A DNA stretch of 64,000 bases from Blepharisma stoltei ATCC 30299 (Eukaryota > Protista > Ciliophora). Below are positions 43,565-50,150 of the stretch, in pieces. Position 1 is the stretch's first letter; each line of letters starts with the position of its first letter. Both the position numbers and the translations under genes were made by a program. Under the pieces are notes generated by a model. The model saw only the letters and a program-made list of their open reading frames with translations, had not been told where the DNA came from and did no database searches. The stretch lies in assembly GCA_965603825.1 (NCBI GenBank), contig CBFDEM010000033.1:496001-560000 (forward strand), written 5' to 3'.

Positions 43565-46297
43565 ATGTCGAGCATGTAAGTGATATGCAGAGCTTATGAT
43601 ATACAATGACAAGAAGCCATGACTGACTTGATGGAACAGGTTCAAATGGAATACTTGCCTTCACATAAAGAAGAAGGCCAGCAGCAGCCAGAAATTGACA
43701 AGTGAAATCCTCTGCGGCGATTTCAGCATTTCGCTCTCCTCTACATCAAGTATGCAGACATCATTCGCAAGTTTGAGGAATGCTATGATCAGATGCTTCA
43801 CCCTCAAAAGCGAGCACTTATCAAGAAGCTGTTAGAAAATACCATTCTGAGACTTCTCGAAGTTAAAGAAGCTTTGGTGTTTTTAAATCCACGACCTAAG
43901 TCAATATTCATAAATATTGATGATTTGCTGATGGATTTGAAGCTAGACCCGGATAACATGGAAATCACGATCCCTCGTTATTTTGCTGAAGAGAATCGGG
44001 ACTATTTAGAAAGACGCACTCAGCTGATCAACAGATTAATGATAAACAATTTCCAGACTGACGAGCCTGAAGAAGACCAAAGAGAAGAAATGTTTTTCTT
44101 AGAACTGAACATAGAGAACGCCATCCGCATCATCCAGAAAAACGAAAGAGGAAGACAAGGCCGAGACAGAATCATCCAAGCCAGGAATTTCTCGAAGAAA
44201 AAAAGACTCAAAGAAGACCCCAAAAACAGAATTGAAGAAGAAAACACTGAAGCGACCCACACAGTGATTGTCCAAAAAGTATTCAGAGCATTTCTCGCAA
44301 GAATTTACATCGACCAAACCAGAGACAAGGAGCTCGAATTTCTCGGAATGGTCGCTCCTAAAAATGTGGAAAACGACCCTACTCTTGAGTATGAAAAAAA
44401 CCAAAAAGTCCGCAGAATGAAAAAAGAAGAGCATCTCAATGAATATATAGGAGCGCTCAAAGATCTCCAAGATGTCGTCCAAAGAAATGAAGGCGCCGAT
44501 ATGGAAGACACTATGAAAGAAGAAAGAAGGAAATTCATGATTGAGTTTATTTCAAACCACGAGTTCAAAGAAGTACCTAAAATCGAGGATTTCTATAAGA
44601 GGGAAAACGAAAATAGGGTTTTGTCCTCAGAAGAAGAAGCTAAAAAGAAAGTAGAGGAAGAAGAAGCAAAAAAGAAGGCAGAAGAGGATAAGAAAAAAAG
44701 CAAGGCGAAAGGAAAAGATAAGGATAAGAAAGGGAAAAAGGGGAAGAAAGGGAAAAAAGATAAGAAGAAAAAGGAAGAGAAAAGTGATGGGACAAAATGG
44801 ATTGGGACAACACCGTGTGTCCAAAAAATGCAGGAAGAAATAGTCAAGTTTAAAGATGTTTGGGAAAGCAGGGATGAGTCCACAAATCCAGTGCAGAAAT
44901 ATGATGAAGAGTTGGCGAAAGGGACAGTGAGACCGACTATTCAAGAAGCTGTTAGATTGCAGGTGGATCAGCTGATGGAGGCGGAGCTGCAAAATATAAG
45001 AATCTACCTTGTAGGAGCACCAGCACCTAAGACTAAGGGAGGCAAAAAAGGCAAAAAAGGCAAAAAGGGCAAAAAAGGTAAAAAAGGTAAGAAAGGTAAA
45101 AAAGGAAAGAAAGGCAAAAAGAAAGAAACCAAGGAAGCCCCACAAGAAGGACCATTGGATGCTTTAACAGGAAACGTTGCAATGGATTTCCTAGGAAAAA
45201 TGAAAGGAGGCCCAAGTGAAAAGCTTGTAGGAAACAGAGCTCCTGATGACATGCTCGCTGAGCTGGTGGCCAAAGGAATCTTGAGGAAGCTCGTCCCTTG
45301 CCACCTTAAAGATTTTATCGGCACATTTAATTATTTAGGGTCTGTTGTTCAGCACAATCTTACATTAGCAGACAGAGAGCCTGATCCATCTTATGCACAA
45401 ATTCGCCAAGTTGTTACAGAATACGGAATTCTCCCAATGGGTTCTCCATTTTTAAGGCAAAATTCTCCAATCTATACAAACTCAATCCTCCTCTATGGCC
45501 CACCTGGCTGCGGGAAAACAATGCTTGTTAGGGCGATGGCTACCCACTTAAACGCTGTCATTTTTGATATTTCCCCATATACCGTTTCTGAGTCTCCTTA
45601 CAAAACTGAGTCTAAAGGTCTCAATAAAATGCTTTACACCGTATTTCGCTCAGCCAAAGAAAACCCACCTGCTATCATCTATATTGATGAGTGTGAAAAA
45701 TACTTTTCAGGTGGAAAAGGGAAAAAAGGCAAAAAGAAAAAAGGTAGAGGAGAGTTCGCAAAGCTCAAAAAAGACTTAGTTGGGCACAAAAAATACCTGA
45801 AAAACCAGCACAGAGTTATAATAGTTGGATGCACCTCAAAGCCATGGGAAGCTAGCAAGGTGGACTTAAAGTCTTACTTCAACAAGCATATCTTGATCCC
45901 TCATCCTAACTATGCAACCAGAAAAGAGCTGTGGGAGCATTTCCTAGACAAGCATGGAGACATACTGAACCCTAAGTTCAATATAAGCACATTGGCTCAG
46001 CTTTCTGAAGGATATACAGCTGGAAGCATTAATCAGACTGTCAATAAAGTTATGACTGATTTAAGGAAGCAGAACCTAAAGTGGAGGCCTTTGCAGATAA
46101 ATGAATTTATTGCCCCACTCTCCAGGACTCCATGTGTGGATACTAATGTTGATAAAGAACTAAGAGAGCTGAACTATGAGCTGCTCGGGATTAAAGCTGC
46201 TTATGAAAAAGAGAAAAAGGATAAAGAAGAAGCAGAAAATGCAAAAGCTGACGGGAAGAAAGGCAAAGGAGGAAAAGGCAAAGGAAAAAAGAAGTAA
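43565..46297 (+). CDS. IQCA1: IQ and AAA domain protein (dynein regulatory complex subunit 11), 905 aa, one 15-nt intron
   Basis: After splicing the N-terminus is MSSIAYDIQ-W-QEA; YDQMLHPQKR, IQKNERGRQGR, VQKVFRAFLAR (IQ), GPPGCGKT, IYIDECEK. Confidence 0.9.
43576..43590 (+). other. 15-nt spliceosomal intron
   Basis: GTAAGTGATATGCAG; in-frame TAA; A at position 10. Confidence 0.85.
45041..45121 (+). repeat. Coding 9-bp tandem repeat, (Gly-Lys-Lys)x9
   Basis: GGN-AAR-AAR nine times with synonymous variation between units. Confidence 0.95.
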
Positions 46298-46307
46298 TAA
46301 GATTAAA

Positions 46308-47372
46308 CTATGATTCAAGCTGCAAAAATGGGCCTTCTGGGTTTGTAATGATTGTGTTGACCATTTCTTCTGTGACTTCTTTGATATCTTCTGGATACCA
46401 TTTAATATCTTCTTTGACCTTTTCTACTAGTTTCTTTGTAACAGCCGTCATAAAATTATAGCTTCTTCTATAGCCCAGTTGAACCCCAAAACTGTAATCT
46501 TGCTCAAGTACCTCTTTTAAATTTCTGCTTAATCCTAACTTAAAGGTTTTTAGTGCAAGTTTTAGTGAAAGTGGGCAAAGTTTGGCTAATATTAGCTTAG
46601 TTTCATTCTTAAATGGTGTAGAATTTATAGATAAATTTAGAAATAAATCATCAATGGTTGTTATATCAGTAAAAATGTCTTCTATTTCTGTTAAATGCAT
46701 TAGAAGCTTGGATTTTTCTTGTAGAGGAGGTTGATGATATTTGTCTAAAACTTCATGGAGGCTGCTTGAAGATTTAATTTCTTCTAAAACTATAGGGATT
46801 TGAGCTTCTGGAATATAGTGTGTTGAAAGACCTGCTCAATATAAATCGATCCCATCTAGAGCTTTTCCTGTTAGCATTATGTACAGTCCTAATGATTTAT
46901 TAGATAAATGCGAGAAAAAATAAGACGCTCCAGCATCAGGAACGAGACCAACTGCGCTTTCTGGCATTGAAAATCGAGTAGTTTCTGTGCATACTCTATA
47001 TTTACAAGCCATAGCTATCCCATTACCAGCACCTATACATAATCCTCTCAAAATGGCCAGAGTTTCAGTAGGCTGCTTATAAACTTGATATATGGTGGAA
47101 AGTTCTGCCCTATAAAACTCCAAAATAATTAAAGGATTTTCAAAGATAGCTAAGATATCTCCTCCTGCTGAAAAAGCTTTAGGAGTGCAGCTTTGAAACA
47201 CAAAATTTTTGTTTCTTGCTGTATTAATTAGATCAGAGATTGTTTGAATCATTTCATAATTTAAGGAGTTCAATCTTTCAGGCCTGTTTAAAGTAAAAAT
47301 TCTGGTACGAGGAAAGTCTTCATGCAATACGTTCGAGCTTAAATGCTGACGAAGCATTTGAAGTCTTTCCAT
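46308..47372 (-). CDS. HIBCH: 3-hydroxyisobutyryl-CoA hydrolase (crotonase family), 354 aa, N-terminal PTS2-like signal
   Basis: LNRPERLNSL, AFSAGGDI, FSMPESAVGLVPDAGASYF, 'DLY-W(TGA)-AGLSTHYI', CPLSLKL. Confidence 0.85.
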
Positions 47373-47658
47373 TTAAAAAATATTAAAATTTTGCTTTCTA
47401 GTACGTATTCAAAGACACCTTTTTCTTCCATGAAATTTGATGGCTAAAGGTTGTAAATTAGCTCAATAGTAACAGCTTTTATCAATTTCGAACGAAATTT
47501 ATAAATGAAAGTTGAGGCTGCTGCACTTAGCGAGCAGCTGATTGTTTTGCAAATAGTGAAGTTTGAAACAAACTCATAAATCGAAAGGATATATACAGTT
47601 TAATGTGAAATAAAAACACTTCTTTTGCTATGATCCTTAAATAAAAATATATTTATCT

Positions 47659-47663
47659 AAAAA
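47659..47663 (-). terminator. Oligo(dT) RNA polymerase III terminator
   Basis: T5 on the minus strand, one base after the predicted discriminator of the tRNA-like gene. Confidence 0.55.
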
Positions 47664-47664
47664 G

Positions 47665-47736
47665 GTCCAAGGTCGGGAGTCGAACCCGATTATTAAAAGC
47701 TTTGATAGTCTTATAATTGGCCCAGGCCACCCTGGA
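47665..47736 (-). ncRNA. tRNA-like Pol III RNA gene (non-canonical tRNA, pseudo-tRNA or other tRNA-derived RNA)
   Basis: 72 nt: acceptor TCCAGGG/CCTTGGA; perfect T arm TCGGG-TTCGACT-CCCGA (B box); TGGC at positions 8-11; TTTTT terminator directly downstream. D arm and anticodon arm are atypical. Confidence 0.7.
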
Positions 47737-47909
47737 TTGGTATTTTTTAAGCTCTATCTCTTAAATGTAACTTTTTGGGAGAATAGCATCTTAAATTTTT
47801 GGAATAAACAAAGTAGTATTTCAATCTATAGCGAAATGGAAATAAAATCCCATAATTTTTAATGCAAAAATTTTATTAACACCCTAAGCCAATTCATATT
47901 TTAAAATTA

Positions 47910-50150
47910 ATGTCACATCTCATGCAGGACCCTAGTAGAAATCAAAATCATCCTTCAAGTCCATCTCCAACAGTATCTCCAATCGACTCAAATCAGCCAT
48001 CTCAGCATGTAAGCTTTTCAAACCAACCCACTCCTCACATATCTATGGTTCAATCATCCCAAGACAAATTTTTTCGTTCCTCAAAAAATCAATCCCCTTT
48101 ACCAGGCAAAAGTCCTCAGCTTTTAAAAACAGCCAAAACCCAATTGAAAACCAGAAATTTTTCGTCATTAAATGATAAACAAAAAACAGAGGCCTACTAT
48201 GATTTATATGATAGGAATCTTGAATTAAAGCAAATGGAAAATGAATTAAAAGAAAGAATTAAGCAGCTTGTTACACAACTGACAAAATTGACAGCTGATA
48301 TTAAATATGAACGAACTCTGCTAGAAGGAGGGGAAAATAGTGAAGTGAAGCTAATTATTGATGATTTAAATAGCAAAAATCAAAAATTAATGCAAGAAAA
48401 TAACAACTTAAAATCAAAAATTAAAGAATTATCAAGCAAATCTTTGAGAGGGGCAAAGCAGCCAAGTGGAAAAAGTGTAAAGCTTTCATCAGAGAAAACA
48501 ATGACCCTTCAGCCTGCAGTTATTGAAAAACAAAAGAGACTTGAAGAAATTATTGTAGAAAGAGATTCCTTAATTCTCAAGCTAAAAGAGCAGCTTCAAA
48601 GCTCAGAAGAAGTAATTTCACAGCTGAGAAATGAAAAATTAGCTGTATTAGGAAAGATTCCAACAGAAAAAATGTATAAGCTCTCTGATTTCGAAGAAAA
48701 GGTTGAGACATTGACTGAAAGCTACGAAGCCCAGTCAACTTATCTAGAAGTAGTAAAGCAGATGCTTGAAGAATCTGAAGAGCTTTTAAGAAAAGAAAAA
48801 CTCACCTCTTTTGATCTAAGTCTAAAAGTCAAAGAGCTTGAAGCAAACTCAGTTAAAGAACCTTATGAGCTAAAAATCCAAGAGCTGACACAAGAAAAAA
48901 TTCAGCTCGAACTAAAAATAAAAGAACTCTGCGACACCCCAATCATCAGAGACGCAAAAGGATTATCAGATACCACTTATAATATTTTGGAAAACGAAAT
49001 CGTAGAAAGGCATAAATTAATAATCCAGTACAAAACCAGAATATCAGAATTGGAAAATGAGCACATAAAGCTTAATGAAATGCTAAGACTTGTACAAGCA
49101 GAAAGGAATAAGCTAAAAGAAGAAAACCTTATATTGGCTTACAATTTGGAAAAAAGAGCGAAATATGTAGAAGAGTTTGAGTCCAAGCTTGTTTGGCTTG
49201 CAAGGGACAACGATACTGATGCTTTTATGAGAGCTCTTGGGATGCTAAAGCTAGGACTTAATGGAAAAGAATGGCCAGTCGTAGAACCTTTTGAAGAAAA
49301 CTCCAAGCTGAAGCAAGAAAATGAAAAGTTGACTGTCGAAAAAGGAGAAATTGCAGCTGAACTCAAAAAATGCCAAAATTTGTTAGAATTGAGGGATCAG
49401 ATTGAAAATGAAAAAGTTTCATTAATTCAGTCAGAAAATGAGAAGCTTAACTGCTTGCTGAGGTCTGCTCAAAAAAGAATAGATGAGCTTAGCAGGCTTG
49501 CTGAGTACAGAGGAAGTTTAGCTTCTCGTGGCAGCCAAGAAATTCAAAGGAATTTTGCTATGGAATCTTATGGGTTTGGAGCTGGGTTTAAAGAGGATGG
49601 CAGCGAAGTAGGAGTTGGACAGAATATTTTTGATTTGCTCATTGTCGATGCTGAATTTTATAATAAAGCATTAGAAACAGATGGTATTTCATTTTGAAAT
49701 AAACTAGTCACATGTCTATCAGTAGATTTCTACGATCATGAAACACAAATAACATCTCTATGTGAAGGGCTTCAGCCAAAATACGATATCCACATGAGTT
49801 TTCTGATAAGTATGGACCAATTGTTCTTAAGGTATTTACATGAAGGATATGTTGTAATAGACGTCAACATTGTTAACAGAGACAAATTTATCCCTATTGC
49901 GAAGGCTCAAATACCTCTATTGAATTTATTAGGTTTTTCAAAACCTGAAAGTAACAGAAGAGTAATTGAATCCGCTTGCATTTTAACTAGCTGACAGGAT
50001 GATAAGAAAACATTAGGAGGACTGAGATATAAAATCAAAATGAGGCACCCTCTTAACGATTTATATGCATTAGAGCAAACCGGAGTTATAGAAAACCCAA
50101 TAACTATCAACGCAACCAAAGCCATGACAAATCAGCAATCTTTGTACTAA
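47910..50150 (+). CDS. RPGRIP1L/fantom-like transition-zone protein (coiled coil + single C2 domain), 746 aa
   Basis: Long coiled coil, then 'GQNIFDLLI..SVDFYDHETQITSLCEGLQPKYD..MDQLFLRYL', matching the first C2 domain of RPGRIP1/1L. TGA at 49695 and 49992; TAA 50148-50150. Confidence 0.78.

Follow-up and report, generated by a model that had tools for sequence, protein, structure and literature searches.

A 72-nucleotide tRNA-shaped RNA of Blepharisma stoltei belongs to a small gene family with a covarying 10-nucleotide-loop arm and is most likely a tRNA mimic without a decoding role

Ciliates in which UGA means tryptophan (Trp) have no cognate transfer RNA (tRNA) for it, and how they manage is a live question. 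A 72-nucleotide (nt) element with a bearing on it lies in a 64-kilobase (kb) stretch of the Blepharisma stoltei ATCC 30299 genome (contig CBFDEM010000033.1, positions 496,001 to 560,000; hereafter the window). The element lies on the minus strand at 47665..47736, and a first-pass annotation, made from the letters alone, had described it as a non-canonical tRNA-like gene with UCA at the tip of an anticodon-like arm, suggesting an atypical UGA decoder, a tRNA mimic or a vault/Y-like RNA polymerase III (Pol III) RNA. Comparison with its genomic relatives points to a functional gene for a tRNA-shaped RNA that most likely does not decode. Among the three suggestions, "tRNA mimic" is the best description of an element whose central arm, with its 10-nt loop, is fixed by covariation.

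Within the somatic genome of B. stoltei ATCC 30299, the window contig is the one published as Contig_39, because tRNA-His(GTG) and tRNA-Glu(TTC) sit on it at their exact published tRNAscan-SE coordinates. The element itself has been described before, under the name "Contig_39-tRNA-like(UCA)" (Swart et al. 2023, bioRxiv 10.1101/2023.10.09.561518). The match comprises a single 72-nt model hit on Contig_39 and exactly three clustered paralogs on Contig_1, which we find to be 71.2, 68.1 and 63.9% identical to the window copy, against 59-71% in that preprint. Its supplement and Extended Data Fig. 1d-f describe a 72-bp locus, drawn as a cloverleaf with a possible UCA, that is missed by tRNAscan-SE and ARAGORN and shows no similarity to other tRNA genes in blastn-short. 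Its identity to the loci in synteny with it in two further Blepharisma species is 93.8%, with flanks at ~60%. YAMAT-seq coverage was ~7800x, compared with a tRNA median of 5500x, and the reads carried a non-templated CCA tail and a modification signature; the clustered Contig_1 paralogs were regarded as possibly pseudogenes (Swart et al. 2023). What is already known thus comprises the locus, the expression of the RNA and the hypothesis built on UCA. The present analysis adds a fifth full-length paralog, a fragment copy, a covariation-backed arm with a 10-nt loop, the observation that UCA is not conserved, the rejection of both a 7-nt loop and an 8/4 acceptor/T arrangement, and a link to other genes with C73.

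A covariance model (R1) built from the window copy was searched genome-wide (41.46 Mb, 64 contigs) and recovered five full-length copies, each with a T-run terminator, plus one fragment copy (Table 1). Three of the full-length copies (C1a, C1b and C1c) are clustered within Contig_1:245791-246829. The Contig_56 copy (C52), which is 68% identical to the window copy and has a perfect 7-bp central stem with the loop AACAUCUCAG, is a fifth full-length member that is not among the paralogs in Swart et al. 2023. All five share the acceptor TCCARGG/CCYTGGA, C73, a GGC-N3-4-GCC hairpin with GG in its loop, and a canonical T arm. Together with a G-C-closed central stem, a 10-nt loop bearing U5 and C6, and a T-run, these features define a Blepharisma mini-D-arm tRNA-like family, of which the window copy is the founding member. 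The T-run starts 1-3 nt past the discriminator in every copy, as it does in the canonical tRNA genes of the genome (+1 to +3). Those canonical genes also have a TATA-like box ~30 nt upstream (-35 to -25); three paralogs carry a clear CTATATA box (motif aaCTATATAt..CCG, about -32). C1a and the window copy lack the motif, and the TATA-like box of the window copy is the weakest in the family. Within this small Blepharisma gene family, conservation is highest for the window copy.

The first-pass description of the sequence reads as stated in all its parts: a 7-bp acceptor stem (TCCAGGG/CCTTGGA) with a single G-U at 5:68, a mini D hairpin, a T arm with a B box, a terminator, and a length of 72 nt. 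The gene proper starts at 47736, and A47737 already belongs to the flank. U8 precedes the hairpin GGC-CUGG-GCC, the central arm is A/U-rich, and the T-arm DNA GGTTCGACTCC is a perfect match to the B-box consensus GGTTCGANTCC. After the discriminator C (47665) comes one C and then TTTTT (47663-47659); that the discriminator is C, entered as a caveat at the outset, turns out to be an invariant of the family. The minimum-free-energy (MFE) fold is cloverleaf-like at -22.7 kcal/mol and gives a long central stem capped by AUCAA. For this single-sequence fold z is -1.94 and 5 of 200 shuffles are equally good, so that the fold energy is only marginally better than chance and alone no proof that the element is real. 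Its reality is confirmed by strong evidence of another kind, namely four full-length paralogs, a shared architecture and compensatory changes, which also substantiate the earlier proposal of a selected RNA with intact outer stems around a remodelled core.

The outer stems are 100% paired in all five copies. Within the acceptor, six of the seven pairs are invariant and pair 5:68 occurs as G-U, A-U or G-C; within the T stem, two of five pairs have changed on both sides in a compensatory way (CG to UA, GC to AU), and the T loop reads UUCGACU, UUCAACU or UUCGAAU. The mini D stem GGC/GCC is invariant across the five paralogs and hence provides no covariation for or against it. The acceptor sequence is frozen although overall identity to the window copy is only 64-71%, which argues for sequence-specific recognition of the acceptor end, beyond pairing alone.

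The central arm retains its form through sequence change between the paralogs. All five copies can form a 7-layer central stem with an invariant closing G-C pair (G27-C38) and a 10-nt loop. A common 10-nt loop allows 31 of 35 pairs, compared with 26 of 35 for a common 7-nt loop, which is no better than shuffles; shuffled central sequences, each given its best loop size, average 27.1 +/- 1.0, and none of 300 reaches 31. Because full-length MAFFT (A2) and model-guided (A3) alignments mis-register the central 3' strand, pairing was also scored on gap-free, equal-length central segments (alignment A4). There, 88.6% of the central-stem cells are paired versus 60.2 +/- 6.8% in shuffles, six of seven pairs have changed on both sides, and 0/500 shuffles reach any of five measures; controls with a slid partner strand yield 40-64% paired. 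RNAalifold predicts the same central helix independently, and full-length MAFFT independently marks G27, U32 and C33 as invariant central columns.

This register decides between the two central folds proposed in the first pass, both of which are possible in the single sequence. The 5-bp stem (AAGAC/GCUUU, one A-C mismatch) with the 7-nt loop UA-UCA-AA is excluded by the family, because it joins G27 to U39, whereas in the covarying register the partner of G27 is C38. The second proposal, a long stem with an AUCAA cap, corresponds to the family stem plus two pairs found only in the window copy. The 8/4 acceptor/T arrangement proposed along with it does not hold for the family: it needs U8-A64, which can form in only two of five copies, and the 7/5 arrangement is invariant.

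What, then, becomes of UCA? In the family loop, U5 and C6 never change, but the next position does: A7 occurs in the window copy, C1b and C1c, and U7 in C1a and C52. The homologous triplet is therefore UCA in three of five copies and UCU in the other two. The triplet is preceded by A in the window copy, C in C1a, A in C52, and C in both C1b and C1c, and never by the U33 that is needed for the anticodon U-turn, so that the earlier caveat of A33 in place of U33 extends, as A or C, to all five copies. A random 10-nt loop of the same base composition contains UCA ~14% of the time, and UCA in the loop is weak evidence by itself. Conservation of the central arm and of UCA in related species had been named as a check on the first-pass reading; among the paralogs the arm is conserved and UCA is not, and for orthologs there is the published identity of 93.8%.

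Class assignment by similarity gives a split picture, tRNA-like above and non-canonical below. ARAGORN finds no tRNA anywhere in the 64-kb window and Rfam gives the 72-nt element no match at the gathering cut-off, which bears out the expectation that tRNA scanners could miss it. The element does not reach the 29-bit threshold of the canonical tRNA model (RF00005); its best score in the tRNA clan, and its best Rfam match at a permissive expect value (E <= 10), is 14.6 bits to selenocysteine tRNA (tRNA-Sec, RF01852; E = 2.1, gathering score 47), and the paralogs have no tRNA-clan match at E <= 10. Like canonical tRNAs such as tRNA-Asp and tRNA-Glu, it is 72 nt long and has a 7-bp acceptor and a 5-bp T stem (fully paired in all five copies) with a UUCRANU loop of T-loop consensus, a B box, a T-run, U1-A72 and, as published, CCA. 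Unlike them, it has C73, a variable region of only 1-4 nt, and a 7-layer central arm with a 10-nt loop; the five-copy consensus has no 5-bp anticodon stem with a 7-nt loop, U33 and purine 37. The D stem of 3-4 bp is within the tRNA norm, but its loop, which always contains GG, has 3-4 nt rather than 7-11.

Other classes fit less well. Vault RNA and Y RNA models have no Rfam match even at E <= 10, and the published CCA tail points to tRNA-type processing, both of which speak against the vault/Y-like Pol III RNA suggested earlier. The layout of a tRNA-derived short interspersed nuclear element is not present either, as the terminator comes directly after the discriminator with no body or tail. 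A reading as a retroelement primer was dropped: when the complement of the CCA-tailed 3' end was searched in the somatic genome as a primer-binding site, only the genes themselves matched.

How might such an RNA work? In tRNA, two D-loop Gs normally dock onto the T loop. The top half of the element, an acceptor/T minihelix with the GG of the mini D loop docking in the same way, would then be accepted by RNase P, by RNase Z and by the enzyme that adds CCA, and we propose that the published RNA is mature, CCA-tailed, modified and abundant because these enzymes recognise that tRNA-like half. The frozen acceptor sequence and C73 probably form a site read by a specific protein, possibly an aminoacyl-tRNA synthetase, and the 10-nt loop with its invariant U-C probably provides a second recognition site for a protein or RNA partner. 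The bottom half, a conserved but non-canonical 7-layer stem and 10-nt loop, would not be an anticodon arm, from which it would follow that the RNA is a mimic that does not decode. In mode of working, though without homology, the nearest analogue is mascRNA / MEN-beta of vertebrates (RF01684), which is tRNA-shaped, processed by RNase P and RNase Z, CCA-tailed and non-decoding, with a non-functional anticodon-like arm; it is ~61 nt long and released from long Pol II transcripts, at their 3' end. The element differs from it in being a stand-alone gene with tRNA-type flanks and shares no sequence or Rfam similarity with it.

Several points weigh against a non-decoding mimic. Enlarged anticodon loops can decode in rare natural tRNAs, such as yeast mitochondrial tRNA-Thr with its 8-nt loop, so loop size alone cannot exclude decoding. 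The covariation test draws on five related paralogs, two of which (C1b and C1c) are close, and its 24-nt segments were picked by maximal pairing, which the shuffle test with loop-size choice controls for. The extra loop pairs C29-G37 and U30-A36 can form in the window copy and not in the paralogs, and since the whole 72 nt is reported to be conserved between species, the window copy may have a function of its own. Expression, CCA tail, modification and cross-species conservation all come from one preprint supplement, whose authors left Trp charging open, stating that charging by tryptophanyl-tRNA synthetase (TrpRS) "should be determined in future" (bioRxiv 10.1101/2023.10.09.561518).

One rival, put forward in the first pass and also by Swart et al. 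2023, is an atypical UGA decoder, a Trp-charged RNA that would read UGA through UCA and complement tRNA-Trp(CCA). It would make sense of a UCA in mid-loop (positions 5-7) with two invariant bases and A7 in three of five copies, and of a genome in which UGA makes up ~36% of Trp codons (44087 TGA vs 78535 TGG); the RNA is abundant, CCA-tailed and conserved, and Blepharisma has a second, weakly expressed TrpRS paralog unique to it (bioRxiv 10.1101/2023.10.09.561518). Against this stand the 10-nt rather than 7-nt loop of the family structure, the lack of U33, UCU in two paralogs, and a D arm cut down to a 3-bp stem with a 4-nt loop. The acceptor end speaks against it too: where the tRNA-Trp of this genome has the features G1-C72 and A73, the latter a eukaryotic TrpRS identity element, the 72-nt element has U1-A72 and C73, and its acceptor/T half matches tRNA-Trp at 8.8/32 and tRNA-Sec at 9.8/32, among the lowest values of all isoacceptors. 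B. stoltei moreover has another UGA-reading candidate in tRNA-Trp(CCA), encoded by seven genes, with G1-C72, A73, a normal D arm, a 4-bp anticodon stem and the 7-nt loop CUCCAAA, and unrelated in sequence to the element. UGA=Trp decoding has been attributed to this tRNA with its 4-bp stem, and no C-to-U editing of it was detected in B. stoltei (Kachale et al. 2023; Swart et al. 2023), so that a sufficient mechanism is already documented; the first-pass remark that UGA=Trp ciliates are not known to have a nuclear tRNA-Trp(UCA), tRNA-Trp(CCA) being the prevailing model, agrees with this literature. Taken together, the evidence makes a UGA decoder of this kind very improbable. About as improbable, if not slightly more so, is the broader idea that the RNA, along with all the 10-nt-loop genes, represents a decoding adaptor of a structurally new class, charged via the frozen acceptor end or the loop and working on the ribosome via loop positions 5-7; if it were true, the triplet would be UCA for UGA here and UCU in two paralogs, and Blepharisma would have a cognate UGA reader after all. 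A divergent tRNA-Sec with 8/4 or 9/4 geometry and a UCA anticodon, for which the best permissive Rfam match and the U8-A64 pair of the window copy might speak, is effectively refuted already. Its 14.6 bits fall far below the at least 47 expected, the element lacks a 9/4 geometry, a 6-bp D stem and a long variable arm (the last two already noted as absent in the first pass), 8/4 is confined to two copies, the paralogs lack any tRNA-clan hit, and the typical 87-nt tRNA-Sec of the genome lies elsewhere (G000:C30:34444-34529, 75.6 bits).

Two further rivals leave decoding aside. A guide or antisense RNA, in which the tRNA-like top half would serve processing, stability and export while the central arm or loop pairs with a messenger, ribosomal or small RNA, is unlikely, even though central-arm sequence varies between paralogs with the structure kept, as if each copy had its own target. 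Only 10 nt are single-stranded, and the invariant U-C of the loop suggests one partner for the whole family rather than copy-specific targets. Weak matches to the 5' half and central arm do occur antisense in two long open reading frames (ORFs): G000:C35:620211-620288, ~29/33 identical, inside a 359-codon ORF (model E = 0.6), and G000:C58:616171-616234, ~23/29 identical, inside a 690-codon ORF (model E = 0.08). With genome-wide E of 0.08-0.6 and unrelated encoded peptides, these are probably chance matches. A neutral relic, that is, a decaying Asp/Glu-type tRNA pseudogene still transcribed and processed through its surviving promoter and top half, is quite improbable. The nearest canonical tRNAs of the top half are indeed tRNA-Asp (21.4/32) and tRNA-Glu (18.4/32), fragment copies exist, such as a 5' half on Contig_59 with a 15-nt direct repeat, and the Contig_1 copies are possibly pseudogenes (bioRxiv 10.1101/2023.10.09.561518). 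Yet five copies at 64-71% identity keep a non-canonical architecture, with compensatory changes in the T and central stems and with loop size, G-C closing pair and U5-C6 all invariant; there is no close canonical tRNA relative, and both the 93.8% versus ~60% flank identity across species and the coverage above the tRNA median (Swart et al. 2023) are at odds with decay.

A non-decoding tRNA mimic thus remains our favoured reading, and it has consequences for the decoding problem. Among published nuclear candidates, Contig_39-tRNA-like(UCA) alone has a possible UCA. The 10-nt loop of its family and the UCA/UCU variation make the idea of a cognate decoder much less likely, and this in turn lends indirect support to the model of tRNA-Trp(CCA) with a 4-bp stem. 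The family also offers a clear target for tests: a tRNA mimic, abundant and conserved, whose acceptor end is frozen and whose loop signature is fixed. Should the RNA prove to be charged, eukaryotes would gain a rare example of a dedicated tRNA-like carrier that is non-decoding, or decodes non-canonically.

The acceptor/T halves nearest to that of the element belong to low-scoring, odd tRNAscan predictions with U1-A72 and C73 (19-22/32 identical for Undet, Arg GCG, Val GAC and Phe AAA; Table 1), followed by tRNA-Asp and tRNA-Glu. In three of these odd C73 genes the central loop is 10 nt long and its sixth base is C; that of Undet_c42, ACUAUCCAAG, is one position away from the window loop ACUAUCAAAG. 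The anticodons assigned as Val GAC, Arg GCG and Phe AAA are probably artefacts of a forced 7-nt loop. The D arm of the odd C73 genes is normal, and Undet, Arg GCG, Val GAC and Phe AAA, whose central stem has 4-6 bp, are called by tRNAscan-SE at 32-59 bits, in contrast to the mini D hairpin and longer stem of the window family. Blepharisma seems to have a wider group of tRNA-like genes with C73 and 10-nt loops, in which the window family would be the most derived branch. Descent from tRNA-Glu(CUC), in a register with U33 and A37 that gives CUC or AUC, was considered and dropped as a misfit with the covarying stem. Whole-length identity to isoacceptors is undiscriminating, and a loose Asp/Glu-like affinity of the top half remains.

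Table 1. Parts of the 72-nt gene, family members, related predictions and neighbouring genes. Positions without a contig name are those of the window; central arms are given as 5' strand, loop, 3' strand.
Feature	Position	Strand	Remarks
Complete tRNA-like gene, 72 nt with C discriminator (window copy)	47665..47736	-	Contig_39:543665-543736; sequence read; R1 107 bits, sole hit on Contig_39
Acceptor stem, 5' strand TCCAGGG	47730..47736	-	partner 47666-47672
Mini D hairpin GGC-CUGG-GCC	47719..47728	-	3-bp stem (4 bp if U8-A19); 4-nt loop with GG
Central stem, 5' strand UUAUAAG, positions 21-27	47710..47716	-	partner 47693-47699; 6/7 layers paired, one U-U mismatch
Central loop ACUAUCAAAG, 10 nt, positions 28-37	47700..47709	-	AUCAA tip if C29-G37 and U30-A36 form
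UCA triplet, loop positions 5-7	47703..47705	-	supposed anticodon of the first-pass annotation
Central stem, 3' strand CUUUUAA, positions 38-44	47693..47699	-	covariation and RNAalifold
T arm UCGGG-UUCGACU-CCCGA	47673..47689	-	contains B box GGTTCGACTCC
Acceptor stem, 3' strand CCUUGGA	47666..47672	-	discriminator C at 47665
T5 run, Pol III terminator	47659..47663	-	begins 2 nt past discriminator
Contig_1 copy	Contig_1:245791-245863	-	R1 49 bits
Contig_56 copy (C52)	Contig_56:366640-366710	-	R1 46 bits; 71 nt
Contig_1 copy	Contig_1:246761-246829	+	R1 40 bits
Contig_1 copy	Contig_1:246555-246624	+	R1 34 bits
Central arm, window copy			UUAUAAG, ACUAUCAAAG, CUUUUAA
Central arm, C1a			AAGCAUG, CCGCUCUCAU, CGUGUUA
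Central arm, C52			GAUAUUG, AACAUCUCAG, CAGUAUU
Central arm, C1b			AAAUAUG, UUUCUCACUC, CUUAUUU
Central arm, C1c			AACGAGG, UUUCUCACUC, CCUUCUU
"Undet" (Undet_c42)	Contig_42:127654-127725		odd tRNAscan prediction, U1-A72, C73
"Arg GCG"	Contig_43:104467-104538		odd tRNAscan prediction, U1-A72, C73
"Val GAC"	Contig_2:83102-83173		odd tRNAscan prediction, U1-A72, C73
"Phe AAA"	Contig_39:56559-56630		odd tRNAscan prediction, U1-A72, C73
"Glu TTC"	Contig_22:410325-410395		odd tRNAscan prediction, U1-A72, C73
AAA ATPase gene	44501-46294	+	
Enoyl-CoA hydratase/isomerase family gene	46308-47372	-	ECH_2, E = 5.5e-41; one in-frame UGA
Unannotated 756-aa ORF	47880-50150	+	first 595 residues without Pfam match

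The locus is intergenic, in a 538-bp divergent spacer between the enoyl-CoA hydratase-family gene and the unannotated ORF, and none of the neighbouring genes, the AAA ATPase gene included, gives a hint on the function of the RNA. A second strain under the same species label is identical over 47623-47736, with one change at 47744 and an indel and two substitutions just below 47623; the comparison is uninformative on selection because there is too little divergence. A metagenome scan with the strict family pattern gave 0 hits. A loose pattern gave at least 120, of which the 80 inspected were ordinary prokaryotic tRNAs and no family member, mostly tRNA-Asn(GUU) with normal D arms and G73.

The fragment copy lies in intergenic DNA at Contig_59:519682-519746 and corresponds to the first 40 nt of the window gene (38/40 identical). 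A 15-nt direct repeat, AGCTTAGTTTTCGAC, stands on either side of it, and the TTCGAC at the end of this repeat is similar to the T loop. The arrangement, which the second strain shares, resembles a truncated derivative in 1.3 tandem units.

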